64,000 nucleotides of DNA from Schizochytrium sp. TIO01 (Eukaryota; Protista; Bigyra: Labyrinthulomycetes): assembly GCA_004764695.1 (NCBI GenBank), contig SMSO01000013.1:1-64000 (forward strand), written 5' to 3'. Numbering within the stretch: the stretch's first letter is position 1; every line of letters begins with the position of its first letter. The notes beneath the pieces were generated by a model, which saw only the letters and a list, made by a program, of their open reading frames with translations, made no database searches and had not been told where the DNA came from. This document shows positions 16,801-63,700 of this stretch, piece by piece. Made by a program: the position numbers and the translations under genes.

Positions 16801-19092
16801 TGCCGACTCTATGGAGGCACAAGAATCGGTGTCTGACGAGATATCAATGTCCTCTCCAGGAGAACACACCCTTTCGAACAATTCTTCAGGGGTCAAAGAA
16901 CTCCAACCATAGAAACTGCGGCGTTTTGTAAACGAATGAACGAAAGAAAGACAGTAAAAACGCTTGTTAGAAAAACGATGAACGCATCTAAAGACGGCCT
17001 CGGAAGTCCATATGGAGACATGGAGAGAACCAGCGAAGGCAAGGCTCTGCACAAGCTGGGAATAGCAGCAGAGGGAACGAAACTTACTAGATTTGAACAG
17101 AAGGACATGCTTTGTGCAGAGACTTTGCGACGGCCTTTGCGCCCTCCGAGCCAATGTTGTTATACTGAAGACTGTGAGTATAAATGAATAAGTTTGTTTT
17201 GTTCATTCGTTGTCAGGAAAGACAGGTCCAGTCAGTTGATCCTGTTTTGTTTTGTTTTTCCTCACAATAAAAAGCAATCAGTTCTTCTTTTTCTGCTGCT
17301 GCTGCCTATCAAATTATATAGATTTCCTTCTTCTCTTTGTAAAAAAGAAAAGACTTCTTTGCCTTTCTTTGCGTACCCAACTACGTAAACTACTTAGGTA
17401 GTGTACCAGCAGTACTACAAACACCAAGCACTAAAAAGAAAGAAAGAAAAAGCTTGGTCCTGACTATTACGATAGCTTTCCCTCGTGGATGATTCCACAA
17501 ACGTACTGTAAAGTTTGAAGGTTCTTGCATCCCTCGAGTGCCTTTGCGACGGCCTTTGCGCCCTCCGAGCCAATGTTGTTGTCTGAAGACTGTGAGTATA
17601 AATGAATAAGTTTGTTTTGTTCATTCGTTGTCAGGAAAGACAGGTCCAGTCAGTTGATCCTGTTTTGTTTTGTTTTTCCTCACAATAAAAAGCAATCACC
17701 TCTTCTTCTTCTGCTGCTGCTGCCTATCAAATTATATAGATTTCCTTCTTCTCTTTGTAAAAAAGAAAAGACTTCTTTGCCTTTCTTTGCGTACCCAACT
17801 ACGTAAACTACTTAGGTAGTGTACCAGCAGTACTACAAACACCAAGCACTAAAAAGAAAGAAAGAAAAAGCTTGGTCCTGACTATTACGATAGCTTTCCC
17901 TCGTGGATGATTCCACAAACGTACTCTAAAGTTTGAAGGTTCTTGCATCCCTCGAGTGCCTTTGCGACGGCCTTTGCGCCCTCATCGCCAATGTTGTTGT
18001 TGTAAAGACTGTGAGTATAAATGAATAAGTTTGTTTTGTTCATTCGTTGTCAGGAAAGACAGGTCCAGTCAGTTGATCCTGTTTTGTTTTGTTTTTCCTC
18101 ACAATAAAAAGCAATCAGCTCTTCTTCTCTTCTGCTGCTGCTGCTGCCTATCAAATTATATAGATTTCCTTCTTCTCTTTGTAAAAAAGAAAAGACTTCT
18201 TTGCCTTTCTTTGCGTACCCAACTACGTAAACTACTTAGGTAGTGTACCAGCAGTACTACAAACACCAAGCACTAAAAAGAAAGAAAGAAAAAGCTTGGT
18301 CCTGACTATTACGATAGCTTTCCCTCGTGGATGATTCCACAAACGTACTTAAAGTTTGAAGGTTCTTGCATCCCTCGAGTGCCTTTGCGACGGCCTTTGC
18401 GCCCTCCGAGCCAATGTTGTTGTTGAAAGACTGTGAGTATAAATGAATAAGTTTGTTTTGTTCATTCGTTGTCAGGAAAGACAGGTCCAGTCAGTTGATC
18501 CTGTTTTGTTTTGTTTTTCCTCACAATAAAAAGCAATCAGCTCTTCTTCTTCTTCTTCTGCTGCTGCTGCTGCCTATCAAATTATATAGATTTCCTTCTT
18601 CTCTTTGTAAAAAAGAAAAGACTTCTTTGCCTTTCTTTGCGTACCCAACTACGTAAACTACTTAGGTAGTATACCAGCAGTACTACAAACACCAAGCACT
18701 AAAAAGAAAGAAAGAAAAAGCTTGGTCCTGACTATTACGATAGCGTTCCCTCGTGGATGATTCCACAAACGTACACTAAAGTTCGAAGGTTCTTGCATCC
18801 CTCGAGTGCCTTTGCGACGGCCTTTGCGCCCTCCGAGCCAATGTTGTTTCCACCAAGACTGTGTTTGTTTGTTTGTTTGTTTGTGAACAAGTGAGAGTAA
18901 GTATATGCCATTTCCAACTTCTTCATTAGTGCCACTACAAGTTCAAAACTATTCTTCTTCTACAAAGCTGACTACTACAACAAATCGACGACGCGGTGCC
19001 TCCTTCTTCTGTCTGCTCCCTTCTGCATCGTGCGCTTACCTAATCTCCGTCGTATCTTCTCTGATGTCCTCAATTCTCTCTGCTTTGGTCAT
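13876..19092 (-). CDS. LRR / helical region / protein kinase / RING + IBR-Rcat-like protein, copy A (5 LRR exons; two frameshifted as assembled)
   Basis: Exons: 19092-19040 (MTKAERIEDIREDTTEI); LRRs 18858-18775, 18430-18349 (82 nt), 18008-17925, 17589-17507 (83 nt), 17171-17088; acidic linker 16915-16721; final exon 16564-13876. All introns GT..CAG, phase 2. Kinase motifs VLKE, HCDIKPEN, DFDG, YVAPE, DMYSVG; RING-like CLVC..C..FLCRDC..CMKPEC; CCPNC..GCCAVKC..CGHHFCAWC. Confidence 0.85.
17088..18858 (-). repeat. ~420-bp exon-intron tandem array, copy A (5 LRR exons)
   Basis: Repeated unit with acceptor ..tatactcaCAG and donor GTACGTTTGTGG flanking a GSEGAKAVAKALEGCKNL exon. Confidence 0.95.
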
Positions 19093-20274: not shown

Positions 20275-20393
20275 AACATTCAACACCGGGGCTTCGCATG
20301 CAGTCCCCTATCATACTACTGACCCGGCCCTACGCGACTTTACTTCTCAGTGCGAATGAGATGAGGTGTTACCCGCGTGGTATGATCGAATGT
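20275..20393 (-). rRNA. 5S rRNA (copy 2)
   Basis: Same 119-nt sequence as copy 1, followed by a T run. Confidence 0.93.
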
Positions 20394-20423: not shown

Positions 20424-20954
20424 GGTATCATTAAATTTGATAGTCACTTACTTACTTTTTTGACGACTTAGGTGCAAGATATAAGGAGAGAGTGGTAGTG
20501 GAACCTCTGCAGCAAGCATCCCTGCAAAACATATTCTAGGAGTAGGCTTGAGGAAATAGGAATAGCCTTGAAAGAGCGAGAAAGAAAGGAGGTCATACAT
20601 GCAGACCCGAGGCTGAGTAGGCAAGGTTAGGTCCAAACTAGTAAAATATCCTTTTACCTCGAGAGCACTAAGAAGCATCTCCTTCTTAGGGAAAATCAGA
20701 ATAACTCAGTAAGTCAGACCATGTGTGCAGAACCCGGTCATCGACTTGCAGCTTTACGTCCAGCAGGTTCGAAACCTTCTGCAACGACTGGGACTGTGCC
20801 ACGAGCTTAGCTGAAAAGGCACACGCACGCGCTCGCTCGTAAAGGTATAGATCGTTACTTGCTGCGCGATGTCAGACCACCCAGGTGTTGTCACTGCTTG
20901 AAAAGCTTCAGAATGGCGCTACAACTTTAGAGTAAGTTAACATCGTACTAGCTC

Positions 20955-21182
<228 letters not shown>

Positions 21183-21344
21183 GGTTGATTTATTGAGTAT
21201 GCATCAATCGAAGAAACATCAAAATGACAGCACAACAAAGGTGAAATCCTGAAAGCCAACCTAGATCACTCACGTCCATGCATGCACCTAATATAATGTA
21301 TCATGTGTAATGTATTGCTTGCCATCATTGAATCAAATCGACAG

Positions 21345-34960: not shown

Positions 34961-35075
34961 GTTGCGGTGACCGAGTGGTTAAGGTGGTGGACTGCTATGT
35001 GGCTCATAATGTTGAGTACAACATGTCTTGATCCATTGTTCTCCGAACGCCTGGGTTCGAATCCCAGCCGCAACG
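34961..35075 (+). tRNA. tRNA-Ser(GCT) with intron, unit B
   Basis: Matches 2694-2808 apart from one intron substitution. Confidence 0.92.
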
Positions 35076-36041: not shown

Positions 36042-36806
36042 CTCACTTCAAGACTAGGAAACTGAATATTTTTGTTGGTTTCTTTTCATACTGATACCAT
36101 CCATATCTTACGGTGTGTTTTACTGAATGTACAAGCTCAAGAAATGAAAGGTTAGTTCCCTTTTAAAGGATTCTTTTTCATACTGACAAATGATGATGTA
36201 TCGAGTGTTTTTAACGAATGTTTGAAAAATGCAAAAGCTATTCTTCAATGCTTGCTAGCTTGCAAACCAAAGAAGAGGAGACAGTATTCGGGAAGGCACG
36301 CTACAGTCTGGCTGATTACGTTGGGATTTGGAATTCTATGTACTATACAAGTATCTCCGGTTTGATCTACACTTGTGCAAGGCATCGCTGATTAAGCTAA
36401 ACTTTCTTTGGCAGTTCTTTCCTTGGCACTTGATGAAGGCTCGTCAATTTTATCATAATGATGCTATGATTTTGATTTCTACAATTTAAATCATCGGTTC
36501 TGTTTATCCTCAGATTTCTGAATTAGACTAACGTAAAGGTATACATTTGAGTATACATAGTTTCAAGGTAAAGCCTTGATGATTTGCAGTAAAAGTAATG
36601 CTGTGCTGTTTAAAACCATAGGCTTTTAAGAGAACATGGAGAATCGATAAGCTTGAAAACAAATGTCAGAAGGATATAAACAGGAATTTGTCTACTTTCT
36701 GTACGAGTTTCCGTGGCTTTGCTTTGGCAAGACTGAAACGCAGGTAAAGCATTTGATCCCACAGTTACTTTCCCTAAAACAAAAAGAAATACACTTTGGG
36801 TTCCAG

Positions 36807-36880
36807 AATCTCCGGCGGGACTTGAACCCACGATCTCCTGATTCGTAGTCAGGCACCTTATCCAACTTGGCCACGGAGAC
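36807..36880 (-). tRNA. tRNA-Arg(ACG), unit B
   Basis: Same sequence as 4548-4621. Confidence 0.92.
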
Positions 36881-42331: not shown

Positions 42332-42450
42332 AACATTCAACACCGGGGCTTCGCATGCAGTCCCCTATCATACTACTGACCCGGCCCTACGCGACTTTAC
42401 TTCTCAGTGCGAATGAGATGAGGTGTTACCCGCGTGGTATGATCGAATGT
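42332..42450 (-). rRNA. 5S rRNA (copy 3)
   Basis: Same 119-nt sequence. Confidence 0.93.
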
Positions 42451-46153: not shown

Positions 46154-49100
46154 TTATTCCAATCTGAAGTTTGCGCCAACAATATCTGGTGTTAGCAAAG
46201 GCGACAATAACTCTTTCAAAACGAGTCGAAGATTTCTATCCTGAATTTTTGCATTCCAGTACTCACGCAGACGTTCAGCGCGCAGCAACTGCCACGCCTC
46301 ACGAACCTGCTCAAATGAATCAGCAAAAAATGGATCTTGCCCAAGTCTTCTTGAACAGGTTCTCACATGATCATGACATGCATCTTCATCCTGAGAACTG
46401 TAGCCAAGACACCAAGCGCAGAAGTGATGACCACAAGTCTCATTACCGCACTCTACAGCACAGCAACCGGCAAAATCGTGTACATATGCCTTACAGTTCG
46501 GACAACATGTGCTCAAGATCTTCTCTTGAATATGAAGTAAATGAAGCCGTGCGTCGCGATTCTGTTCATCAGCACGTAAAACTTGTGCTATGCGCCTTTG
46601 GATCTCCTTCTCCGCCCAAACTGCTGCTTCATTTTCTGCCTTCATCTTCGCAATCAACAAAAGATGATTCAAAGCGCTTGGTGCAAGACGGGTGATTTCT
46701 TGACCTGATATCCTTCCACTACATTCAGGTTTCATGCATGCCATCGTTCCATCAGCATCCACTCTTACGTTAGCAAGTGGCCGTGCCGCCGCTTCTACTG
46801 AAGATTCGATACAGTCTCTGCAAAGGAAGTCTCCCTCCTCGCAGCTCGTGCCCTCGGAAAGCAGATGCTCCTCCATGCATACTAGACATATCTTGACAGG
46901 GATCTTAGGAGCTCCAAAAGCTTCATGTTGGAGTGCTTGGCGAGCGGTTGGACGCTGGCCAGGGTCTGTTGCTGTAAGAGCATCGATAAGTTTCTGCATT
47001 GCAGCGGTTCGCTCAGTAGGATACAGCTCCTTTAAGCTTATGCCCACAGAGTACATGTCCATCGCTGTTTCAAACCTATCTACAGGCCCATTCTGCAACT
47101 CGGGGCAAATGTACCGTGGCGTGGCCTGGAGTGATGTGTAAGTTGCGATGTAGTCCGCAACCTTGATGCCGTCAAAGTCGCCGATCAATGGTGTCCCGTT
47201 GCTTGTGAGGAAAATGTTTTCTGGTTTGATGTCACAATGCACAATGCCGTGGGTATGTAAATCCGCCACACCGATAAGCAGGCCCATAGCAAGTCGGTCG
47301 CGCGCTGCTTTGCCTTCGTTAGGATGACTCTCAATCCACTTGGCAAGGTCACCTTGCTCGTAGAAAGGCATAATAATACAACCACGCGGTACTCCATGTG
47401 CCATGTCCACAAAAGCACCAGTGATACGGATCACGTGCTGAGACACCACTTTGCCCAGATTGGCAACTTGTCTGTAGAAGGTTTTAGATTGACTTAGATG
47501 TCCAAGCTGAAACTCTTTGAGAACCATAAGTTTATCATCTCCATCAAATACTTTCTGGACTCTCTTGCCACCTCTGGAAGCAAGGGGCTCGCCGACAGGT
47601 TTGAAGTCCGTAACTGTGACATTCGTTAACCAAAGGTCAGAACATGCTACTTCAAAAACACCCTCTGCACTTACGTGAAGCCTTTCTAGCCAGGCTCTAT
47701 CTTGCAGCAACTCTGGATAATGTTCCTGCGCGTGTTGCAGAGTCTCAGCAAGCTTATGACGAAAAGCTTTGCTAAGGTCGATAGGGTTGCCTTGAGAGAG
47801 AATGAGCTCTTGTTTCTTGATACGATTTCTAAAATATGCTCGCTCTTCCTCATCCAAGTCCTCTATTTCAAGTTCTTCTTTGGCTCTCTTCAAAATTTCT
47901 GTGGCTTTCCTCGACTTGTCAAGTTTCTGGAATAATGCTTCAACATCTGAGACAGAAGGTTCTTTCAAACCCAGTGCTGCATAGTCATACAGCTCAGAGA
48001 GCTTTTCTGGTGTGCACTTGCTCGTGTCATTCAATGCAGCACATTCAGTGTATCCTTCAAATCGAGCGAATGTTGAACTTATCGCGCAAAGTATTTCCCA
48101 CAATTGGGTACGAAGTGTATCTCCTTGTAGAACTTCGATCTCTTGCTTGAGAGCACTCTCAAGTTCAGACAACTCTGGTTCTAGCTCCATGGCCTGCTCA
48201 GGTGTCCTCAGGGCAACCGATAATCCATCACCAAGTTCTAGCTCAGACAATCGAGAGGTAACGCGCTTTACAGCTTGTTGGCTTCGTTCACCAATGTTGT
48301 TGTGTTGGCCTTCTCCACTCCTCTTGTACCCTTCCACGCATTGGACAGCCTGAATAACGAGTTCTTGGCAGTGTTTGAAGTCATCTGTGATGGTCTCTTC
48401 ATCGACTGGAGCAAGGTTGATCTTTAGATCGCTTACCAAACTTTCAACTCTCACTTTGAATTCTCGCACTGCACTCTCATCACTTTCACAAAGGTTGGCG
48501 CGAACCCATGGGTACACAACCTGCAAAAGTGAATACAGGTACCTCCGTTCGGTGTTCCGCTTTTCGATGAGGCTGGGCAAGCCATCAGCAGAGCTTGCAC
48601 GAATCTGGCCTTGTAGCACGTCAAGACTCTCTTTGGAGTTCTTGATGTCAGCGAAAACCTGTCGCAACTTCACTTGGCCAAAGTAGCCCTGGATCGCCGA
48701 TCCTACGAACTCCTCAAGCAAGGCAATCCCAGTTTGCAGGGAGTTTCCTCTGACCCCACCTCGGTCAACGCGCAAGTCCGAGACTTTCTTGGCAAGCTGC
48801 ACCACATCAGCGAAACTCACGCTCGCTCCATCCGCCCGTTCTCTGAGACGAACAAGAAGACGTAAGCAAACGAGCAAAATGATGTTGAAGCAGCAACAAA
48901 AGCAGAAGCAAAAGTTAGGATACCCTCTATCTCAATAACTCAATTCGTGGAATGACTAATTACACGATCCCAAACAAAGATTAACCGAATGAACTTACCC
49001 ACATCCATCCAAAGTAGCAAGCCCGGTGCCATCAATGCCGTCTTGCTCGTTCTTGGGCTCTGCAGAAGGCTCGCTTTCTGCCGACTCTATGGAAGCATAG

Positions 49101-52100
49101 GAATCGAGCTCTGACGAGAAATCTGCAATGTCCTCTCCAGGAGAACACATTTCGAACAATTGTTTTGGGGTCAAAGGCAAATTCCGATTATAGAAACTGT
49201 GGCGTTTTGCAAACGAATGAACGAAAGAAAGAGAATATAAGTGCTGGTTAGAAAAACGATGAACGCATCTAAAGACAGCCTCGAAAGTCCATGTTAAGAC
49301 ATGGAGAGAACCAGCGAAGGCAAGGCTCTGCGCAAGCTGGGAATAGCAGCAGAGGGAACGGAACTTACTAGATTTTAACAGAAGGACATGCTTTGTGCAG
49401 AGACTTTGCGACGGCCTTTGCGCCCTCCGAGCCAATGTCGTTCTCAGAAAGACTGTGAGTAGAAATAAATAAGTTTGTTTTGTTCATTCGTTGTCAGGAA
49501 AGACAGGTCCAGTCAGTTGATCCTGTTTTGTTTTGTTTTGTTTTTCCTCACAATAAAAAGCAATCAGCTCTTCTTCTGCTGCTGCTGCTGCTGCCTATCA
49601 AATTATATAGATTTCCTTCTTCTCTTTGTAAAAAAGAAAAGACTTCTTTGCCTTTCTTTGCGTACCCAACTACGTAAACTACTTAGGTAGTGTACCAGCA
49701 GTACTACAAACACTAAGCACTCAAAAGAAAGAAAGAAAAAGCTTGGTCCTGACTATTACGATAGCTTTCCCTCGTGGATGATTCCACAAACGTACACTAA
49801 AGTTTGAAGGTTCTTGCATCCCTCGAGTGCCTTTGCGACGGCCTTTGCGCCCTCCGAGCCAATGTTGTTGTTGTCAAGACTGTGAGTATAAATGAATAAG
49901 TTTGTTTTGTTCATTCGTTGTCAGGAAAGACAGGTCCAGTCAGTTGATCCTGTTTTGTTTTGTTTTGTTTTTCCTCACAATAAAAAGCAATCAGCTCTTC
50001 TTCTTCTGCTGCTGCTGCCTATCAAATTATATAGATTTCCTTTTGCCCTTCCTTCTTCTCTTTGTAAAAAAGAAAAGACTTCTTTGCCTTTCTTTGCGTA
50101 CCCAACTACGTAAACTACTTAGGTAGTGTACCAGCAGTACTACAAACACCAAGCACTAAAAAGAAAGAAAGAAAAAGCTTGGTCCTGACTATTACGATAG
50201 CTTTCCCTCGTGGATGATTCCACAAACGTACACTAAAGTTTGAAGGTTCTTGCATCCCTCGAGTGCCTTTGCGACGGCCTTTGCGCCCTCCGAGCCAATG
50301 TTGTTGCCAGAAAGACTGTGAGTATAAATGAATAAGTTTGTTTTGTTCATTCGTTGTCAGGAAAGACAGGTCCAGTCAGTTGATCCTGTTTTGTTTTGTT
50401 TTTCATCACAATAAAAAGCAATCAGCTTTTGTTCTGCTGTTGCTGTTGCCTATCAAATTATATAGATTTCCTTCTTCTCTTTGTAAAAAAGAAAAGACTT
50501 CTTTGCCTTTCTTTGCGTACCCAACTACGTAAACTACTTAGGTAGTGTACCAGCAGTACTACAAACACCAAGCACTAAAAAGAAAGAAAGAAAAAGCTTG
50601 GTCCTGACTATTACGATAGCTTTCCCTCGTGGATGATTCCACAAACGTACTCTAAAGTTTGAAGGTTCTTGCATCCCTCGAGTGCCTTTGCGACGGCCTT
50701 TGCGCCCTCCGAGCCAATGTTGTTGCTACGAAGACTGTGAGTATAAATGAATAAGTTTGTTTTGTTCATTCGTTGTCAGGAAAGACAGGTCCAGTCAGTT
50801 GATCCTGTTTTGTTTTGTTTTTCATCACAATAAAAAGCAATCACCTCTTCTTCTTCTGCTGCTGCTGCCTATCAAATTATATAGATTTCCTTCTTGTCTT
50901 TGTAAAAAAGAAAAGACTTCTTTGCCTTTCTTTGCGTACCCAACTACGTAAACTACTTAGGTAGTGTACCAGCAGTACTACAAACACTAAGCACTCAAAA
51001 GAAAGAAAGAAAAAGCTTGGTCCTGACTATTACGATAGCTTTCCCTCGTGGATGATTCCACAAACGTACACTAAAGTTTGAAGGTTCTTGCATCCCTCGA
51101 GTGCCTTTGCGACGGCCTTTGCGCCCTCCGAGCCAATGTTGTTGCCAGAAAGACTGTGAGTATAAATGAATAAGTTTGTTTTGTTCATTCGTTGTCAGGA
51201 AAGACAGGTCCAGTCAGTTGATCCTGTTTTGTTTTGTTTTTCATCACAATAAAAAGCAATCAGCTTTTGTTCTGCTGTTGCTGTTGCCTATCAAATTATA
51301 TAGATTTCCTTCTTCTCTTTGTAAAAAAGAAAAGACTTCTTTGCCTTTCTTTGCGTACCCAACTACGTAAACTACTTAGGTAGTGTACCAGCAGTACTAC
51401 AAACACCAAGCACTAAAAAGAAAGAAAGAAAAAGCTTGGTCCTGACTATTACGATAGCTTTCCCTCGTGGATGATTCCACAAACGTACTCTAAAGTTTGA
51501 AGGTTCTTGCATCCCTCGAGTGCCTTTGCGACGGCCTTTGCGCCCTCATCGCCAATGTTGTTGCCAGAAAGACTGTGAGTATAAATGAATAAGTTTGTTT
51601 TGTTCATTCGTTGTCAAGAAAGACAGGTCCAGTCAGTTGATCCTGTTTTGTTTTGTTTTGTTTTTCCTCACAATAAAAAGCAATCAGCTTTTGTTCTGCT
51701 GTTGCTGTTGCCTATCAAATTATATAGATTTCCTTCTTCTCTTTGTAAAAAAGAAAAGACTTCTTTGCCTTTCTTTGCGTACCCAACTACGTAAACTACT
51801 TAGGTAGTGTACCAGCAGTACTACAAACACCAAGCACTAAAAAGAAAGAAAGAAAAAGCTTGGTCCTGACTATTACGATAGCTTTCCCTCGTGGATGATT
51901 CCACAAACGTACCCAAGTTGAGTCAGGTTCTTGCATCCCTCGAGTGCCTTTGCGACGGCCTTTGCGCCCTCCGAGCCAATGTTGTTGTTGTTAAGACTGT
52001 GAGTATAAATGAATAAGTTTGTTTTGTTCATTCGTTGTCAGGAAAGACAGGTCCAGTCAGTTGATCCTGTTTTGTTTTGTTTTTCCTCACAATAAAAAGC

Positions 52101-55100
52101 AATCAGCTCTTCTTCTGCTGCTGCTGCTGCTGCCTATCAAATTATATAGATTTCCTTTTGCCCTTCCTTCTTCTTTTTGTAAAAAAGAAAAGACTTCTTT
52201 GTCTTTCTTTGTGTACCCAACTACACCAGCAGTACTACAAACACCAAGCACTAAAAAGAAAGAAAGAAAAAGCTTGGTCCTGACTATTACGATAGCTTTC
52301 CCTCGTGGATGATTCCACAAACGTACACTAAAGTTTGAAGGTTCTTGCATCCCTCGAGTGCCTTTGCGACGGCCTTTGCGCCCTCATCGCTAATCTTGTT
52401 GTTGTAAAGACTGTGAGTATAAATGAATAAGTTTGTTTTGTTCATTCGTTGTCAGGAAAGACAGGTCCCAGTCAGTTGATCCTGTTTTGTTTTGTTTTTC
52501 CTCACAATAAAAAGCAATCAGCTCTTCTTCTTCTTCTGCTGCTGCTGCTGCCTATCAAATTATATAGATTTCCTTCTTCTCTTTGTAAAAAAGAAAAGAC
52601 TTCTTTGCCTTTCTTTGCCTACCCAACTACGTAAACTACGTAGATAGTGTACCAGCAGTACTATAAACACCAAGCACTAAAAAGAAAGAAAGAAAAAGCT
52701 TGGTCCTGACTATTACGATAGCTTTCCCTCGTGGATGATTCCACAAACGTACCCAAGTTGAGTCAGGTTCTTGCATCCCTCGAGTGCCTTTGCGACGGCC
52801 TTTGCGCCCTCCGAGCCAATGTTGTTCTTATTAAGACTGTGAGTATAAATGAATAAGTTTGTTTTGTTCATTCGTTGTCAGGAAAGACAGGTCCCAGTCA
52901 GTTGATCCTGTTTTGTTTTGTTTTCATCACAATAAAAAGCAATCACCTCTTCTTCTTCTGCTGCTGCTGCTGCTGCTGCGTATCAAATTATATAGATTTC
53001 CTTCTTCTCTTTGTAAAAAAGAAAAGACTTCTTTGCCTTTCTTTGCCTACCCAACTACGTAAACTACGTAGATAGTGTACCAGCAGTACTATAAACACCA
53101 AGCACTAAAAAGAAAGAAAGAAAAAGCTTGGTCCTGACTATTACGATAGCTTTCCCTCGTGGATGATTCCACAAACGTACTACAATTGTTGAAGGTTCTT
53201 GCATCCCTCGAGTGCCTTTGCGACGGCCTTTGCGCCCTCCGAGCCAATGTTGTTGCTACGAAGACTGTGAGTATAAATGAATAAGTTTGTTTTGTTCATT
53301 CGTTGTCAGGAAAGACAGGTCCAGTCAGTTGATCCTGTTTTGTTTTGTTTTTCATCACAATAAAAAGCAATCAGCTTTTGTTCTGCTGTTGCTGTTGCCT
53401 ATCAAATTATATAGATTTCCTTCTTCTCTTTGTAAAAAAGAAAAGACTTCTTTGCCTTTCTTTGCGTACCCAACTACGTAAACTACTTAGGTAGTGTACC
53501 AGCAGTACTACAAACACCAAGCACTAAAAAGAAAGAAAGAAAAAGCTTGGTCCTGACTATTACGATAGCTTTCCCTCGTGGATGATTCCACAAACGTACT
53601 TCAGATAAGTCAGGTTCTTGCATCCCTCGAGTGCCTTTGCGACGGCCTTTGCGCCCTCCGAGCCAATGTTGTTGTTGTTAAGACTGTGAGTATAAATGAA
53701 TAAGTTTGTTTTGTTCATTCGTTGTCAGGAAAGACAGGTCCAGTCAGTTGATCCTGTTTTGTTTTGTTTTTCCTCACAATAAAAAGCAATCAGCTCTTCT
53801 TCTTCTGCTGCTGCTGCTGCCTATCAAATTATATAGATTTCCTTTTGCCCTTCCTTCTTCTTTTTGTAAAAAAGAAAAGACTTCTTTGTCTTTCTTTGTG
53901 TACCCAACTACACCAGCAGTACTACAAACACCAAGCACTAAAAAGAAAGAAAGAAAAAGCTTGGTCCTGACTATTACGATAGCTTTCCCTCGTGGATGAT
54001 TCCACAAACGTACACTAAAGTTTGAAGGTTCTTGCATCCCTCGAGTGCCTTTGCGACGGCCTTTGCGCCCTCATCGCTAATCTTGTTGTTGTAAAGACTG
54101 TGAGTATAAATGAATAAGTTTGTTTTGTTCATTCGTTGTCAGGAAAGACAGGTCCCAGTCAGTTGATCCTGTTTTGTTTTGTTTTTCCTCACAATAAAAA
54201 GCAATCAGCTCTTCTTCTTCTTCTGCTGCTGCTGCTGCCTATCAAATTATATAGATTTCCTTCTTCTCTTTGTAAAAAAGAAAAGACTTCTTTGCCTTTC
54301 TTTGCCTACCCAACTACGTAAACTACGTAGATAGTGTACCAGCAGTACTATAAACACCAAGCACTAAAAAGAAAGAAAGAAAAAGCTTGGTCCTGACTAT
54401 TACGATAGCTTTCCCTCGTGGATGATTCCACAAACGTACCCAAGTTGAGTCAGGTTCTTGCATCCCTCGAGTGCCTTTGCGACGGCCTTTGCGCCCTCCG
54501 AGCCAATGTTGTTCTTATTAAGACTGTGAGTATAAATGAATAAGTTTGTTTTGTTCATTCGTTGTCAGGAAAGACAGGTCCCAGTCAGTTGATCCTGTTT
54601 TGTTTTGTTTTCATCACAATAAAAAGCAATCACCTCTTCTTCTTCTGCTGCTGCTGCTGCTGCTGCGTATCAAATTATATAGATTTCCTTCTTCTCTTTG
54701 TAAAAAAGAAAAGACTTCTTTGCCTTTCTTTGCCTACCCAACTACGTAAACTACGTAGATAGTGTACCAGCAGTACTATAAACACCAAGCACTAAAAAGA
54801 AAGAAAGAAAAAGCTTGGTCCTGACTATTACGATAGCTTTCCCTCGTGGATGATTCCACAAACGTACTACAATTGTTGAAGGTTCTTGCATCCCTCGAGT
54901 GCCTTTGCGACGGCCTTTGCGCCCTCCGAGCCAATGTTATTCTCAGAAAGACTGTGAGTATAAATGAATAAGTTTGTTTTGTTGATTCGTTGTCAGGAAA
55001 GACAGGTCCAGTCAGTTGATCCTGTTTTGTTTTGTTTTTCCTCACAATAAAAAGCAATCACCTCTTCTTCTGCTGCTGCTGCTGCTGCCTATCAAATTAT

Positions 55101-58100
55101 ATAGATTTCCTTTTGCCCTTCCTTCTTCTCTTTGTAAAAAAGAAAAGACTTCTTTGCCTTTCTTTGCGTACCCAACTACACCAGCAGTACTACAAACACC
55201 AAGCACTAAAAAGAAAGAAAGAAAAAGCTTGGTCCTGACTATTACGATAGCTTTCCCTCGTGGATGATTCCACAAACGTACTACAATTGTTGAAGGTTCT
55301 TGCATCCCTCGAGTGCCTTTGCGACGGCCTTTGCGCCCTCCGAGCCAATGTTATTCTCAGAAAGACTGTGAGTATAAATGAATAAGTTTGTTTTGTTCAT
55401 TCGTTGTCAAGAAAGACAGGTCCAGTCAGTTGATCCTGTTTTGTTTTGTTTTTCCTCGCAATAAAAAGCAATCACCTCTTCTTCTTCTGCTGCTGCTGCG
55501 TATCAAATTATATAGATTTCCTTCTTCTCTTTGTAAAAAAGAAAAGACTTCTTTGCCTTTCTTTGCGTACCCAACTACACCAGCAGTACTACAAACACCA
55601 AGCACTAAAAAGAAAGAAAGAAAAAGCTTGGTCCTGACTATTACGATAGCTTTCCCTCGTGGATGATTCCACAAACGTACCCAAGTTGAGTCAGGTTCTT
55701 GCATCCCTCGAGTGCCTTTGCGACGGCCTTTGCGCCCTCATCGCTAATCTTGTTGTTGTAAAGACTGTGAGTATAAATGAATAAGTTTGTTTTGTTCATT
55801 CGTTGTCAGGAAAGACAGGTCCCAGTCAGTTGATCCTGTTTTGTTTTGTTTTTCCTCACAATAAAAAGCAATCAGCTCTTCTTCTTCTTCTGCTGCTGCT
55901 GCTGCCTATCAAATTATATAGATTTCCTTCTTCTCTTTGTAAAAAAGAAAAGACTTCTTTGCCTTTCTTTGCCTACCCAACTACGTAAACTTCGTAGATA
56001 GTGTACCAGCAGTACTATAAACACCAAGCACTAAAAAGAAAGAAAGAAAAAGCTTGGTCCTGACTATTACGATAGCTTTCCCTCGTGGATGATTCCACAA
56101 ACGTACCCAAGTTGAGTCAGGTTCTTGCATCCCTCGAGTGCCTTTGCGACGGCCTTTGCGCCCTCATCGCTAATCTTGTTGCCAGAAAGACTGTGAGTAT
56201 AAATGAATAAGTTTGTTTTGTTGATTCGTTGTCAAGAAAGACAGGTCCAGTCAGTTGATCCTGTTTTGTATTGTTTTTCCTCACAATAAAAAGCAATCAC
56301 CTCTTCTTCTGCTGCTGCTGTTGCTGCCTATCAAATTATATAGATTTCCTTTTGCCCTTCCTTCTTCTCTTTGTAAAAAAGAAAAGACTTCTTTGCCTTT
56401 CTTTGCGTACCCAACTACACCAGCAGTACTACAAACACCAAGCACTAAAAAGAAAGAAAGAAAAAGCTTGGTCCTGACTATTACGATAGCTTTCCCTCGT
56501 GGATGATTCCACAAACGTACACTAAAGTTTGAAGGTTCTTGCATCCCTCGAGTGCCTTTGCGACGGCCTTTGCGCCCTCCGAGCCAATGTTATTCTCAGA
56601 AAGACTGTGAGTATAAATGAATAAGTTTGTTTTGTTCATTCGTTGTCAAGAAAGACAGGTCCAGTCAGTTGATCCTGTTTTGTTTTGTTTTTCCTCGCAA
56701 TAAAAAGCAATCACCTCTTCTTCTTCTGCTGCTGCTGCGTATCAAATTATATAGATTTCCTTCTTCTCTTTGTAAAAAAGAAAAGACTTCTTTGCCTTTC
56801 TTTGCGTACCCAACTACACCAGCAGTACTACAAACACCAAGCACTAAAAAGAAAGAAAGAAAAAGCTTGGTCCTGACTATTACGATAGCTTTCCCTCGTG
56901 GATGATTCCACAAACGTACCCAAGTTGAGTCAGGTTCTTGCATCCCTCGAGTGCCTTTGCGACGGCCTTTGCGCCCTCCGAGCCAATGTTGTTCTTATTA
57001 AGACTGTGAGTATAAATGAATAAGTTTGTTTTGTTCATTCGTTGTCAGGAAAGACAGGTCCCAGTCAGTTGATCCTGTTTTGTTTTGTTTTTCCTCACAA
57101 TAAAAAGCAATCAGCTCTTCTTCTTCTGCTGCTGCTGCTGCTGCGTATCAAATTATATAGATTTCCTTCTTCTCTTTGTAAAAAAGAAAAGACTTCTTTG
57201 CCTTTCTTTGCGTACCCAACTACACCAGCAGTACTACAAACACCAAGCACTAAAAAGAAAGAAAGAAAAAGCTTGGTCCTGACTATTACGATAGCTTTCC
57301 CTCGTGGATGATTCCACAAACGTACACTAAAGTTTGAAGGTTCTTGCATCCCTCGAGTGCCTTTGCGACGGCCTTTGCGCCCTCCGAGCCAATGTTATTC
57401 TCAGAAAGACTGTGAGTATAAATGAATAAGTTTGTTTTGTTCATTCGTTGTCAAGAAAGACAGGTCCAGTCAGTTGATCCTGTTTTGTTTTGTTTTTCCT
57501 CGCAATAAAAAGCAATCACCTCTTCTTCTTCTGCTGCTGCTGCGTATCAAATTATATAGATTTCCTTCTTCTCTTTGTAAAAAAGAAAAGACTTCTTTGC
57601 CTTTCTTTGCGTACCCAACTACACCAGCAGTACTACAAACACCAAGCACTAAAAAGAAAGAAAGAAAAAGCTTGGTCCTGACTATTACGATAGCTTTCCC
57701 TCGTGGATGATTCCACAAACGTACCCAAGTTGAGTCAGGTTCTTGCATCCCTCGAGTGCCTTTGCGACGGCCTTTGCGCCCTCCGAGCCAATGTTGTTCT
57801 TATTAAGACTGTGAGTATAAATGAATAAGTTTGTTTTGTTCATTCGTTGTCAGGAAAGACAGGTCCCAGTCAGTTGATCCTGTTTTGTTTTGTTTTTCCT
57901 CACAATAAAAAGCAATCAGCTCTTCTTCTTCTGCTGCTGCTGCTGCTGCGTATCAAATTATATAGATTTCCTTCTTCTCTTTGTAAAAAAGAAAAGACTT
58001 CTTTGCCTTTCTTTGCGTACCCAACTACGTAAACTACTTAGGTAGTGTACCAGCAGTACTACAAACACCAAGCACTAAAAAGAAAGAAAGAAAAAGCTTG

Positions 58101-58899
58101 GTCCTGACTATTACGATAGCTTTCCCTCGTGGATGATTCCACAAACGTACTTCAGATAAGTCAGGTTCTTGCATCCCTCGAGTGCCTTTGCGACGGCCTT
58201 TGCGCCCTCATCGCTAATCTTGTTGTTGTAAAGACTGTGAGTATAAATGAATAAGTTTGTTTTGTTCATTCGTTGTCAGGAAAGACAGGTCCCAGTCAGT
58301 TGATCCTGTTTTGTTTTGTTTTTCCTCACAATAAAAAGCAATCAGCTCTATTTCTTCTTCTTCTGCTGCTGCTGCTCCTGCCTATCAAATTATATAGATT
58401 TCCTCTTCTCTTTGTAAAAAAGAAAAGACTTCTTTGCCTTTCTTTGCGTACCCAACTACGTAAACTACTTAGGTAGTGTACCAGCAGTACTACAAACACC
58501 AAGCACTAAAAAGAAAGAAAGAAAAAGCTTGGTCCTGACTATTACGATAGCTTTCCCTCGTGGATGATTCCACAAACGTACACTACTCGTTGAAGGTTCT
58601 TGCATCCCTCGAGTGCCTTTGCGACGGCCTTTGCGCCCTCATGACCAATTCTTTTCTCACCAAGACTGTGTTTGTTTGTTTGTTTGTTGGTGAACAAGTG
58701 AGAGTAAGTATATGCCATTTCTAACTTCTTCATTGGTGCCACTACTAATACAAAGCTATTCTTCTTCTACAAAGCTGACTACTACAACACATCGACGACG
58801 CGATGCCTCCTTCTTCTGTCTCCTCCCTTCTGCATCGTGCACCTACCAAATCTCCGTCGTATCTTCTGTGATGTCCTCAATTCTCTCTGCTTTGGTCAT
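46154..58899 (-). CDS. LRR(23) / helical region / protein kinase / RING + IBR-Rcat-like protein, copy B, predicted 1623 aa
   Basis: Exon 58899-58847 (53 nt). Then 23 exons of 84 nt with lower coordinates 58582, 58151, 57725, 57326, 56920, 56521, 56107, 55681, 55282, 54868, 54440, 54014, 53600, 53181, 52753, 52327, 51913, 51489, 51070, 50651, 50232, 49796, 49369. Linker 49196-48999; final exon 48842-46154. Total 4872 nt, divisible by 3, no internal stop seen, all GT..CAG phase 2. Same kinase and zinc-finger motifs as copy A. Confidence 0.9.
49369..58665 (-). repeat. 399-436-bp exon-intron tandem array, copy B (23 LRR exons)
   Basis: Near-identical introns that vary in (CTT)n(CTG)n length, an optional ttttgcccttcc insertion and an optional ~20-nt deletion; invariant 45-nt exon core. 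Confidence 0.97.
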
Positions 58900-60121: not shown

Positions 60122-60240
60122 AACATTCAACACCGGGGCTTCGCATGCAGTCCCCTATCATACTACTGACCCGGCCCTACGCGACTTTACTTCTCAGTGC
60201 GAATGAGATGAGGTGTTACCCGCGTGGTATGATCGAATGT
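60122..60240 (-). rRNA. 5S rRNA (copy 4)
   Basis: Same 119-nt sequence, followed by a T run. Confidence 0.93.
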
Positions 60241-60785: not shown

Positions 60786-63700
60786 ATGATTAGAGAAAAC
60801 ATGATTTCAGATCACTCTTGTGACTTCTTTGGCGAAATGAACAAGCGAACGCTTCGAAAGCTTCGTGAAGGTTCGGTTACCAAAAATAAAGAGTAAGTGT
60901 AAAAGTAAGAGAAGAGCTTAGGACACAGAAACACCAGACCAAGAATATCTAGCCAGTTAGTAAAAATTTGACTTCCCCGATTTGCGTGTTGATCAGCCGT
61001 GCGTGCTTTATTCATGTGCTGGATACAGATTTGAAAGGGTTGCTGACTTTGAACTTGTTGATGATGCAAAATCTCTTTTTTTAATATAATAGACTAAGTG
61101 GGTACCATTGGGCACGAGTTCAAATTAGCAACGAAGGTTGGCAAGCCTTGACTGAGGCAGTGAAGGAAAATCGTGTGGAGTCAACCTTGAAGTGAGTTTT
61201 CGTTAAAGATTCCGTATTCGCGCGGCATTGTAGACGATCATTAAATTAATGACTGACGGAAGCTGTTCTTTCTCGGTGTTTCGGAGGAAATTCTCGATGA
61301 ATAGACTCAAGAACATTATTGAAGTAATATACAGCCACTGTCTAACCTAACCTAACCTAACCTAACCACGCTCTCCTGTCCACGCATTAACCTGCCTGTA
61401 AGCAGACCTGAAACTCCGATAACTCATATATCATCCTCTTTCTCTTTCTCCTGAGTTTGTCATCCTTGTCAGACTACCTCTCCACGCTTCACAGCACAGG
61501 CTACTCTGCAATAAACATTAATATTAGCAATGATCATTGGGTTGCTCTCGCAAACGCACTGAAGGAGACTACAGTATTGTCTGGGCTCATGTAAGTGAGA
61601 ATTTACATCTCGTGTGTTGAGGCAATGGATCTGATCACACCATTTCATGTTTAATTACATATACACTAACATGAATGATTACCCGTCGAGGCACACAATA
61701 CCATTCTTTGATGGTGGCAAACAAGCAGCTTGTGTAACGTCCCATTCACGACTGAAATGATCAAGGGCTTGGATGGTGTTCTCCAGAAGAATCGAGCTTT
61801 GAAGCGTTTGGGGTGAGTTCAGCTAAGTTAAGGTGAAATGCCATCTAGGTCCCACCTGACAGGTTGTCATTTTTTTGACGAGCATGTCATTGGGGACGAC
61901 TTTGTAGGATCATTATTTGAAAACTGCTAACAGTGAGATTATTTGGTGGTTACTATGATACTCCTTGTTATCAATGGGTGCACAGGCTTTTGGATAACAA
62001 TCTTGGGAGTGAAGCTTTTGCGATTTTGGCGGAAGCTCTGAAGATGAATGAGACGCTGAAATGTTTGGAGTGAGTTTGTTGAAGCAGTAAGACAAGATAT
62101 GTGGTCTCTTTGCCGGTCATTAAAGAGTTTTTTGGTAACAAAATGAGAATGACGACTGACGATGGTATAAATTAATGTGGTTTTACTTGTGAGCGAGCAG
62201 GATTGAAAGGAATATCGGGGCTGACGATTGCGTCGTTTTAGCTGATAGTCTAAAGAACAACCAGTCACTGAGTACAGTAAAGTGAGTATAGTCGGCCTTT
62301 GCAATATTTGCTAGATGTTATGTCTTGTCGTGCATATAAGAGAGTTATATGATAGGTAGCTAACAAATTGTGCGATGCGTTGGCATGGTGGTTTCTTGAA
62401 TGAACAGTCTTGATGACAATACGATTGGCAGCAAAGGTTGTTTGGCTTTGGCCGAGGTGCTCAAGGTAAACGAAACGCTGAGAATTCTACAGTAAGTATA
62501 TATAGTCTATGTATGCCGCCGGATACAGGAATGTTTCTGATAGTTGTGCAGGAAGTTCGCTGACGTTACTGTCGATTGATTAAACGATACTGTTGCATAA
62601 TTTTTGACAAGCGGGAGCTTACAGACTTCGTGGTAACAACGTTGGCAGCAATGTACAGTGTTGGCAGATACACTCAAGAAGAACAAGACGCTGACAGAGT
62701 TGGGGTGAGTTGAACACGATTTCAAGTGTATTCATGTGTCTGTGAAATGGTGAACATGTGGGGCACAAGGAGAGGTTTTGCCTTGATCTTTTTAAAATTA
62801 AAAACACATGGTGAGAAATGTTTGAGCAAGGTGGCTGACGTTCAAACTGGAGTGAAATCACTTTTAATTTTTCATTGTCAATTGTGGACCAATAGGCTGG
62901 GGAACAACAATATTGACAACAAAGGTTGTGCAGCGTTGGCGGATGCACTCAAGACAAACCATACGTTGACCATGCTAGAGTGAGTTGACTGCTATACCCT
63001 TTGCATGCATGCAACAAGAGGGATAGTCATATGATATACTGACAGGAAGCATTGGAATGATTACGATTCTGAAAACTATTTATTGTCTTTGGCCGAGTAC
63101 GGATGCGCAGCCTTACATCTAACAAAATCAACGACGAAGGATGGGTGGGCTTGGCGGAAGTACTGAAGGAGAACAAGACGGTGGAAACGTTGCTGTGAGT
63201 TAGACTAGCAATTTATCAGGCTATTGCCGGTACGAGAAGTTACCCATTGTAGCTTCTTTTGCAAAGAGATGACTGACTTTGATATGAATTGACGCATTTT
63301 TCTTTTTCCACAGGATGAATGGAAGCATTGTTGGCGATAAAGGTTGTGCGACGTTTGCCGAGGTACTCCAGAAAAACCATTCGCTGAAAAACCTAGGGTG
63401 AGTTGAGCAATCTATGTGTTAGACCATTCTGAGAATACACGGGCCTTTGTTCAAATACTTGTCTGTTTCAAGTAAACGTTGGAATATTAGAAGCATAGAG
63501 TTGCAGATGTAGTGGGTCCGTACTAATTGTGCAGGAAGACTATTTGTTAAGATAGCTGACTTTCGTGTAAAAATGGAAACAAATGAAATGATTTGCTATT
63601 TCGTTTTGGACTAATAGTCTGGGTACGAAGTACTTTGATAGCACAGGCTTTCGCGCTTTTCTGGATGCAATCGAGGAAAACCAGGTTTTGAAAGCGCTAT

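Follow-up and report, generated by a model that had tools for sequence, protein, structure and literature searches.

Genes in which each leucine-rich repeat (LRR) has an exon of its own have been described before. In Ectocarpus, LRR-ROCO genes carry one LRR of plant-like type per 72-nt exon (24 aa), have a Roc-COR GTPase as effector and were proposed to encode pathogen receptors (Zambounis et al. 2012, PMC3341825). In the ciliate Tetrahymena, LRR genes have exons of exactly 90 bp and introns that are more than 96% phase 2, and exon and intron together form a tandem unit of ~347 bp that is detectable in the DNA; the youngest such genes are subtelomeric or pericentromeric, growth by unequal recombination was proposed, and the design was thought unique by the authors. 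Tandem repeats linked to ribosomal DNA (rDNA), the LORE-TEARS, have been reported from Aurantiochytrium limacinum, where group 5 (32 elements, 1.8-20.4 units of ~408-481 bp each, typically ~421-434 bp) lies between two 5S genes in subtelomeric rDNA and was published as spacer without database similarity, and group 0 (385-bp unit) is located between 5S and 18S (Collier et al., bioRxiv 10.1101/2023.06.15.545109). Here we analyze the first 64 kb (64,000 nt; the window) of contig SMSO01000013.1 in the assembly of Schizochytrium sp. TIO01 (64.07 Mb, 37 contigs), and in particular the locus at 46154-58899 on its minus strand, where a repeat resembling group 5 reads as an array of LRR exons that precedes a long exon encoding a helical region, a kinase and an RBR-type module. 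We suggest, with a probability of roughly 0.8, that the locus is best explained as an intron-rich LRR-kinase-RBR gene, one of at least 50 variable paralogues, that encodes a putative receptor. The part of this explanation that concerns gene structure alone, namely that 46154-58899 is a real spliced gene of LRR-helical-kinase-RBR architecture, is very probable.

The Ectocarpus genes, which an earlier sequence-only reading of the locus had named as a precedent, are indeed built of one LRR per exon, albeit of 72 nt and in ROCO genes (PMC3341825). The two systems have in common a stramenopile host, exons of fixed length whose symmetry permits shuffling in frame, variable repeat number, inactivated exons and variation on the concave face. 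In contrast to Ectocarpus, however, the exons here are 84 nt long (28 aa) and of ribonuclease inhibitor (RI) type, the output is helical, kinase and RBR without Roc-COR, and the exon-intron unit is homogenised into a 419-bp satellite within rDNA spacers. The geometry is shared with Tetrahymena too, whereas the exons there are 90 bp rather than 84 nt and no kinase-RBR output is described in the accessible part of that account. The present family is an independent further case of exact-length, phase-2, one-LRR-per-exon geometry, whose genomic niche, flanked by 5S genes in subtelomeric rDNA, sets it apart.

The minus strand of the array contains 22 exact sites of the form CAG, 84 nt, GTA[CT]GT, each of which, read at offset +1, gives a stop-free 27-aa LRR peptide of the form L-x-x-N-x-I-G-x-E-G-A-K-A-V-A-K-A-L-E-G-C-K-N-L-x-x-L. 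Together with a diverged cap exon that has a GTAAGT donor they make up the 23 exons of 84 nt and phase 2-2 counted in the sequence-only reading. When the 26 exons of the gene are joined in silico, the product is 4872 nt long and has zero internal stops, in agreement with the in-frame protein of 1623 aa that had been predicted. All introns are GT..AG and phase 2 (after the second codon base), and the 419-bp array unit comprises the 84-nt exon and an intron of ~335 nt, in length classes of 315-352 nt. The LRR exons are identical in length, a multiple of three and bounded by one intron phase (23 out of 23); chance is excluded by the occurrence of the same design in every other family member examined. 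Because all introns are phase 2, units can be gained, lost, exchanged or skipped without loss of frame. The 23 consecutive 28-residue repeats match the RI-type consensus LxxLxLxxNxIGxxGAxxLAxALxxNxx, the split codon being the x between two Leu, in keeping with the RI/NLR-type assignment made at first sight; searched singly, LRR exons reach E 0.003-0.006 against Pfam PF13516 (17-18 bits vs a cutoff of 23.4).

Splicing of this array is observed in public data. Contigs of four runs were mapped onto 47900-49900, three of them RNA-like (X1, X2 and X3, from three studies, 21-37 Mb of contigs) and one DNA-like (X22, 62.5 Mb). A joint from 48842 to 48999, which skips exactly 48843-48998, occurs in one contig in each of X1, X2 and X3 and in none of X22; this is the linker-to-last-exon junction that had been predicted, matched to the letter at the level of the subfamily. 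Depth in the wholly intronic bin 48905-48971 was zero in X1-X3 vs 7876 in X22, and the ratio of LRR exon depth to adjoining intron depth was ~50 in X1-X3 vs 2-3 in X22. The mapped stretch held one full array exon, and LRR-to-LRR junctions thus appear as joints at which a contig goes back. In the RNA-like runs such joints had 37, 27, 21, 20, 11, 2 and 1 intervening letters, each exact for an 84-nt period; the go-back distances in X22 (400, 414 and 422) are those of the genomic unit. A single go-back joint (49848 to 49797, 15 letters) deviated from the 84-nt period. A whole-genome control found 0 sites with two exon cores at the spliced spacing (39 nt) and 227 at the genomic spacing, so that the 84-nt-period contigs cannot derive from the organism's genomic DNA. 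The RNA-like runs also include contigs that do not differ at all from the last exon of the 46154-58899 copy. Splicing of the array is established at the subfamily level.

A diverged paralogue shows the same design in a transcript-derived protein. A search with the C-terminal module recovers the cluster P0010/P0156/P0157 (1240-1243 aa), which includes 'complete' open reading frames from the MMETSP transcriptome MMETSP0960, a sample that we take to be A. limacinum. P0010, which represents the same 90%-identity cluster, has LRR_6 (E 1.4e-33), Pkinase and the same C-terminal module. Residues 328-1236 of P0157 match C13:1153892-1156618 in the present genome at 99%, from which it follows that transcriptome and genome are of the same or nearly the same organism. 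At this locus, where the analysis covered the last seven LRR exons, the 1.5 kb upstream of the last exon accounts at 100% for residues 151-327 of P0157, in 27-residue blocks. The blocks are preceded by AG and one base and followed by two bases and GTAAGT, as 84-nt phase-2 exons are, and are separated by introns of ~85-105 nt. Since the blocks fit 84-nt exons, the exon design is proven at the mRNA level for this paralogue, whose last exon is only ~37% identical to that of the 46154-58899 copy and whose introns are quite different. The linker-kinase joint, the joints of 84-nt period and the MMETSP protein thus all bear out the proposal that the 'satellite' is a spliced exon-intron array.

The array can also be placed among known repeats. 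The window contains two consecutive rDNA-linked units of a thraustochytrid (Aurantiochytrium-like), ~32 kb apiece, and the LRR-kinase gene is flanked by 5S genes on both sides. Tandem Repeats Finder gives 22.1 copies of a 419-bp unit at 49404-58640 (91% matches), 4.1 copies of a 418-bp unit at 17123-18848, flanked by the 5S genes at 10295 and 20275, and 5.5 copies of a 385-bp unit at 22154-24279, upstream of 18S. The first two have the unit size and the location between two 5S genes of LORE-TEARS group 5, and the window layout as a whole is identical to that of groups 5 and 0 in unit sizes and in placement relative to 5S and 18S. Judged from position and unit size, rather than from alignment, the 49404-58640 array is LORE-TEARS group 5, as the sequence-only reading had surmised (bioRxiv 10.1101/2023.06.15.545109). 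Its 22.1 units are slightly more than the published group 5 maximum of 20.4; this is another assembly or strain than the published one. In contrast to the spacer of the published description, groups 5 and 0 are here LRR exon arrays, and splicing makes group 5 part of an LRR-kinase-RBR mRNA. The literature searched contained no report of LRR-kinase-RBR genes or of LORE-TEARS that code for protein.

Variation within the array is concentrated at the exon ends. Among 22 units, nucleotide diversity is 0.24 at exon bases 1-25 and 0.43 at bases 71-84, whereas the 45-nt core has none (0.00) and the introns have 0.022, so the exon ends are 10-20 times more variable than the introns; seven other arrays have the same pattern. 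Among 114 non-cap exons, entropy is highest (3.0-3.1 bits, 13-15 residue types) at exon positions 2, 3 and 26 and reaches smaller maxima at 5, 8 and 25; taken with the split codon, these positions make up the x residues of LxxLxLxxNxIGxxG. For the subfamily linked to rDNA, pN/pS (uncorrected and near saturation) is 1.15 at the six x-position codons vs 0.12 at the other 21. In solved LRR proteins, the LxxLxL strand lines the concave, ligand-binding face. Variable LRR sites were likewise argued to face the concave side in Ectocarpus (Zambounis et al. 2012, PMC3341825). Homogenization everywhere except at the presumed contact residues is as expected from diversifying selection acting against concerted evolution.

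The last exon encodes three regions. The second of them matches Pfam Pkinase (E 8e-27, 94.7 bits vs a cutoff of 31.7) and has the beta-3 Lys (VLK), HCDIKPEN and the first Asp of D-F-D. In all members seen (the window copy, P0001-P0003 and P0157), the alpha-C Glu is replaced by Gln and D-F-D stands for D-F-G, which makes these substitutions a family trait rather than the decay of a single copy. In the PDB the kinase is closest to a 'MAP kinase kinase-like protein' that is itself uncharacterised, with generic CDK, PAK and StkP kinases next, and no PINK1 homology was found in this search; an assignment to a kinase subgroup was dropped.

The third region is a C-terminal module that we identify, from a family profile and a predicted fold, as a divergent RBR-type module with the order RING1, IBR-like, RING2, without placing it in a named RBR subfamily. 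The module has 1510 proteins at E <= 0.001 among 1.84 billion cluster representatives. A profile of 26 diverse members matches RNF216 (5.7e-6), parkin (6.7e-5), Cullin-9 (CUL9), another RBR protein, ARIH2 and HOIL-1 in the PDB, and the RBR matches extend over both halves of the module. An AlphaFold2 model (pLDDT 91.6) gave RNF216 as the best Foldseek match (E 1.4e-4), then HHARI, HOIL-1L, ARIH2 and parkin, with low global TM-scores (0.25-0.28). Near-invariant residues follow the order C-x2-C .. C .. C-x2-C, C .. C, a helix of ~55 residues, and C-P-x-C .. G-C .. C .. C .. F-C-x2-C .. H-x-H .. C. Module residue C166, the Cys of 'GC', shows at least 90% conservation among the 26 members; its counterpart in RNF216 is the 'GC' of the Rcat, whose Cys we take to be the catalytic one. 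The module thus resembles RBR E3 ligases (RNF216/TRIAD3, parkin, HHARI, HOIL-1) in its RING1-like finger, second zinc knuckle, helix and RING2/Rcat-like CPxC..GC..C..C; unlike them it is very divergent, possesses an additional HxH..C tail as well as a helical extension at the C-terminus, and forms part of a fusion with a kinase, and it is a predicted ligase. The kinase with RING/IBR-type fingers that had been recognized by eye is therefore seen again in the Pkinase match and, as an RBR-type module, in profile, model and Foldseek.

The first region, ~420 residues of helices, has no Pfam family and no Atlas match. Foldseek gave weak matches to ClyA-type helical pore-forming toxins (E >= 0.026, TM ~0.2), and the best VIA-align score (Z 8.1) was to generic helical bundles and lay under the stated noise level for helical models; identifications of the region as an MLKL-like or pore-former-like executioner, or as any other fold, were rejected on account of these weak or below-noise matches. 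Roc GTPase, COR, NACHT, NB-ARC, TIR and death domains had no Pfam match on the last exon. Neither a signal peptide nor a membrane helix was found: the N-terminus (MTKAERIEDITED...) is not hydrophobic, and over the last exon the 19-residue Kyte-Doolittle mean peaks at 1.2, inside the kinase. Classification as a plant-type LRR receptor kinase was set aside for lack of both signal peptide and transmembrane helix, and as a ROCO protein or NLR/STAND receptor for lack of Pfam matches to Roc-COR and to NACHT/NB-ARC.

The gene belongs to a large family. At least 50 copies of the last exon are present in the genome at 61-100% protein identity; most are open over ~925 aa and a few have stops. Among the 30 best copies, median dN/dS is 0.32 and the maximum 0.45, with 0.39 in the helical region, 0.21 in the kinase and 0.27 in the Cys-rich (RBR) module, and the rDNA-linked copies among themselves give ~0.3; the last exon is under purifying selection. 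In 11 further arrays, 4 to 18 LRR exons of 84 nt were counted, compared with 23 in the 46154-58899 copy, and another locus in the genome has ~20 consecutive units, so that a sensor of variable length in front of a fixed C-terminal module, as first envisaged, is what the family displays. A cap exon of the ..SLHK..P.V.I type closes every array with a fetched 3' end. Out of ~130 units in 13 arrays, 108 scored 84 nt and four scored 82-83 nt (~3%), the remainder being unresolved by a crude boundary scan. Members that are 61-67% identical have LRR core sequences of their own; their introns, 230-545 nt long, no longer align (diversity 0.44-0.55), and their exon cores are conserved (0.15). In seven of 12 other loci there is a 5S gene of the same orientation 1.2-1.6 kb upstream, and diverged members have none within the 10 kb covered, on which ground the family probably extends beyond rDNA units.

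In the previous rDNA unit lies the neighbouring copy at 13876-19092, which the sequence-only reading had described as a paralogue with five LRR exons. Five units are indeed present, but exon 3 (18430-18349) is 82 nt long and exon 5 (17589-17507) 83 nt, and it is not an intact five-LRR gene as assembled: stops appear when all five exons are read, and the frame is kept only by skipping exons 3 and 5, which gives 1062 aa. The 82- and 83-nt exons arise by single-base losses outside homopolymers; the total loss is 3 nt, and the frame returns after the second of these exons, with stops between. They may be inactivated exons, skipped exons or assembly errors.

Outside the genome, the closest proteins to the window last exon are three Logan-derived ones (P0001-P0003), 51-59% identical. 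The cassette of kinase and RBR-type module stands behind ankyrin repeats, or behind LRR and ankyrin repeats, in the thraustochytrid Hondaea fermentalgiana, and the module occurs by itself in proteins of a dinoflagellate and an oomycete. The module is found at the C-terminus of proteins of up to 3211 aa (P0013, P0014, P0018, P0024) in thraustochytrids, the dinoflagellate and the oomycete. It often follows a kinase, and the sensors differ (Ank, LRR, a weak PQQ-like match); the family is unnamed and has no Pfam match. With NLRs and the variable lymphocyte receptors (VLRs) of lampreys the present genes share an LRR sensor and variation focused on the concave strand, and the 28-aa RI-type LRR is typical of animal NLRs; unlike in those systems, there is no NACHT/NB-ARC here, and the variation is germline, from copy to copy, with no evidence of somatic assembly.

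How might such a protein work? In the explanation favored here, each 84-nt exon encodes one 28-residue RI-type LRR, the array being spliced through an acidic linker onto the conserved last exon. The missing signal peptide and membrane helix suggest that the product would be a cytosolic receptor, and the concave face of its LRRs may bind variable ligands, most plausibly viral or other non-self ones. The output would be phosphorylation-controlled ubiquitin transfer, in which the Ser/Thr kinase or kinase-like domain might gate the fused RBR module. In PINK1-parkin and in phospho-activated RNF216, an RBR ligase is controlled by kinase phosphorylation, and signalling through phosphorylation and ubiquitin is suggested here by analogy with them. 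It is an analogy only, not PINK1 homology: PINK1 and parkin are separate proteins, whereas here kinase and RBR share a single polypeptide, preceded by an LRR sensor. Variation in length and sequence would come from unequal crossing-over and gene conversion, for which the many rDNA-linked copies would serve as partners. A role of the LRRs in recognition, as a receptor, seems to us somewhat better than an even bet, and that the role of the LRR-kinase-RBR family is specifically in immunity or non-self sensing is a tentative suggestion, to which we give rather less than even odds. It would be tempting to go further and to regard the rDNA-linked subtelomeres of thraustochytrids as a diversity generator, in which frequent ectopic recombination between dozens of LRR exon arrays flanked by 5S genes, together with in-frame exon skipping, would keep making new receptors. 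These could vary from one clonal lineage, or even one cell, to the next and would be an anticipatory, VLR-like repertoire against resident mirusvirus-like elements. We consider this extension quite unlikely; if it were true, the whole class of LORE-TEARS would consist of the bodies of receptor genes and not of spacers.

Several observations count against the explanation favored here. The RNA label of X1-X3 is an automatic guess, and the contigs are short and derive from a multi-copy family, which is why splicing and expression are established for the subfamily and not for the 23-LRR copy itself. With its alpha-C Glu replaced by Gln, DFG changed to DFD and the glycine loop poor, the kinase domain may be either an active atypical kinase or a pseudokinase. 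The last 268 residues are below Pfam thresholds (IBR_2 at 8.7 bits and zf-C3HC4_4 at 7.8 bits, both far under their cutoffs), and a single-sequence PDB search with them gave sub-threshold RING, IBR and parkin matches only; the RBR assignment comes from the family profile and the fold, not from simple searches. This copy takes its LRRs, which are otherwise identical, from a small pool of variants, and they may reflect a recent expansion rather than selected diversity. The two frame-breaking exons of the neighbouring copy indicate that some copies may be decaying, and no protein more than 70% identical to the last exon of this copy was found in the protein collections searched. Some of these points would fit a different explanation, in which the family is real and the 23-LRR copy embedded in rDNA is untranslated, a reservoir of LRR cassettes for gene conversion (or a merely tolerated sequence) comparable to silent VSG or var copies. 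RNA contigs that are not assignable to a single copy, LRRs that are near-identical save for a few end variants, the 82- and 83-nt exons next door and the absence of a near-identical protein from the collections searched are all as such an archive would have them. However, the copy is intact, with 26 exons, no stop and canonical splice sites throughout, the RNA-like runs include zero-difference contigs of its last exon, and the rDNA-linked copies have kept a dN/dS of ~0.3 among themselves; an archive of this kind is therefore improbable in our view. A further alternative is that the number 23 is itself an artefact of collapse or expansion of a near-identical array during assembly, the gene being otherwise real. 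The units are 91-100% alike, such arrays are hard to assemble, and one assembly was examined. Yet if the assembly had collapsed or looped, the aperiodic order of exon-end variants and of intron length classes would be unexpected; group 5 arrays of 1.8 to 20.4 units are reported from an independent Nanopore assembly of A. limacinum (bioRxiv 10.1101/2023.06.15.545109), and another locus of the present genome has ~20 consecutive units. We regard such an artefact as very unlikely.

Two further alternatives concern function. One is that the LRR proteins are fast-evolving cytosolic scaffolds with kinase/E3 output that serve housekeeping or developmental signalling, for example nucleolar, in the cell cycle or in mating. 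RI-type LRRs are found in many non-immune proteins, the genes are located in rDNA spacers beside 5S, and Pfam searches gave no NACHT, TIR or death domain. On the other hand, variation is focused on the predicted ligand-contact x positions, at 10-20 times the intron level, there are at least 50 copies with variable repeat number, and in relatives the module is swapped onto Ank or other repeat sensors. Variation at x positions, copy number and sensor swapping are hallmarks of recognition families, and a non-immune role of this kind, while a serious contender, is to our mind unlikely. The other alternative is a structural satellite for the maintenance of chromosome ends or rDNA, the LRR-like frames of which would be relics or chance exonisation. 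It accords with the published interpretation of LORE-TEARS (bioRxiv 10.1101/2023.06.15.545109) and with their regular placement relative to rDNA and 5S, but not with the exact 84-nt length and phase in the great majority of ~130 units, even where introns are unrelated, nor with the observed splicing, the better conservation of exon cores than of introns, or arrays that close with a cap exon and lead into a 900-aa exon that is conserved by purifying selection. It is already largely refuted, and we give it almost no credence.

With the locus read as a gene of an LRR-kinase-RBR family, repeats published as 'non-coding' chromosome-end sequence (LORE-TEARS groups 5 and 0, 126 elements in the published assembly) are to be reassigned to protein-coding exon arrays, and the unusual rDNA subtelomeres of thraustochytrids are to be read differently. 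The one-LRR-per-exon, exact-length, phase-2 design, which the Tetrahymena authors thought unique, appears to be a convergent solution for evolvable binding domains. The kinase-RBR module with assorted repeat sensors, widespread in protists (1510 cluster representatives), is an uncharacterised signalling cassette of some breadth. Moreover, thraustochytrids are hosts of mirusvirus-like elements and industrial producers of docosahexaenoic acid (DHA), and a large variable receptor family would offer an entry point to their immunity.

Table 1. Coordinates of the LRR-kinase-RBR gene, of its neighbouring copy and of the rRNA genes in the window (LSU, large-subunit rRNA; SSU, small-subunit rRNA).
Feature	Position	Strand	Remarks
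Exon 1, ATG + 17 codons + 2 nt	58847-58899	-	Donor GTAGGT; last residues are the first half-LRR strand
LRR exon 1, 84 nt	58582-58665	-	Phase 2, CAG..GTACGT
LRR exon 2, 84 nt	58151-58234	-	
LRR exon 3, 84 nt	57725-57808	-	
LRR exon 4, 84 nt	57326-57409	-	
LRR exon 5, 84 nt	56920-57003	-	
LRR exon 6, 84 nt	56521-56604	-	
LRR exon 7, 84 nt	56107-56190	-	
LRR exon 8, 84 nt	55681-55764	-	
LRR exon 9, 84 nt	55282-55365	-	
LRR exon 10, 84 nt	54868-54951	-	
LRR exon 11, 84 nt	54440-54523	-	
LRR exon 12, 84 nt	54014-54097	-	
LRR exon 13, 84 nt	53600-53683	-	
LRR exon 14, 84 nt	53181-53264	-	
LRR exon 15, 84 nt	52753-52836	-	
LRR exon 16, 84 nt	52327-52410	-	
LRR exon 17, 84 nt	51913-51996	-	
LRR exon 18, 84 nt	51489-51572	-	
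LRR exon 19, 84 nt	51070-51153	-	
LRR exon 20, 84 nt	50651-50734	-	
LRR exon 21, 84 nt	50232-50315	-	
LRR exon 22, 84 nt	49796-49879	-	RNA-like contigs ~50-fold over adjoining intron
LRR exon 23, 84 nt	49369-49452	-	Diverged cap repeat (..AKSLHKACPSVKI); donor GTAAGT
Acidic linker exon, 198 nt	48999-49196	-	RNA-like contig coverage
Last intron, 156 nt	48843-48998	-	GTAAGT..CAG
Last exon, 2689 nt	46154-48842	-	Helical region, kinase, RBR module; includes TAA stop at 46154-46156
All-helical region, ~420 aa	47570-48841	-	Predicted, in last exon
Protein kinase domain (Pkinase)	47021-47560	-	In last exon
RBR-type module	46157-46960	-	Predicted: RING1-like, IBR-like knuckle, long helix, RING2/Rcat-like CPxC..GC..C..FCAWC..HxH..C
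Neighbouring copy, previous ~32-kb rDNA unit	13876-19092	-	5 units; last exon intact, 90% identical
LSU, partial	1-1964		
SSU	28721-30508		Followed by 5.8S
LSU	30898-34241		
5S rRNA gene	60122-60240	-	1.2 kb upstream of ATG, strand shared with LRR-kinase gene
5S rRNA gene	42332-42450	-	3.7 kb downstream of LRR-kinase gene
Further 5S genes	10295 and 20275	-	

Some additional features of the window concern the group 0 array. At 21345-24001 on the plus strand, this 385-bp repeat also has one LRR per exon, with six 84-nt exons bounded by CAG..GTAAGT and a core ..IGSEGAKAVAAALKENRSLTSL, and eight additional LRR exons of this type are found on the plus strand of another locus, L034. No long downstream exon was seen before 18S, and a run of N adjoins the array directly: it comprises 688 N at 24280-24967, and the apparent GC of 24001-26000 drops to 0.24. 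A 276-bp unit x 2.3 (98% matches) at 21435-22074 lies between LRR exons one and two of group 0, the intron thereby being ~950 nt long, and a (GCTT)x59 microsatellite is situated at 20951-21187 (98% matches), with the 5S gene at 20275 on one side and the first group 0 LRR exon on the other.

Other observations relate to the rDNA units themselves. Each unit has, just 3' of LSU, a tRNA-Arg(ACG) and a second, 115-nt Rfam tRNA match (2694-2808 and 34961-35075 on the plus strand; 4547-4621 and 36806-36880 on the minus strand); the 115-nt match was not called by ARAGORN and probably contains an intron. At 61342-61367, 1.1 kb past the upstream 5S gene, an interstitial (CTAAC)x5.2 permutes the telomere repeat CCTAA/TTAGG that has been reported for A. 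limacinum. Two other loci (L034 4884-5163 and L041 3511-3790) have a doubled 5S gene upstream of the LRR-kinase gene, where the second copy is diverged (77 vs 96 bits) and follows after a gap of 42 nt, at a start-to-start distance of 161 nt.

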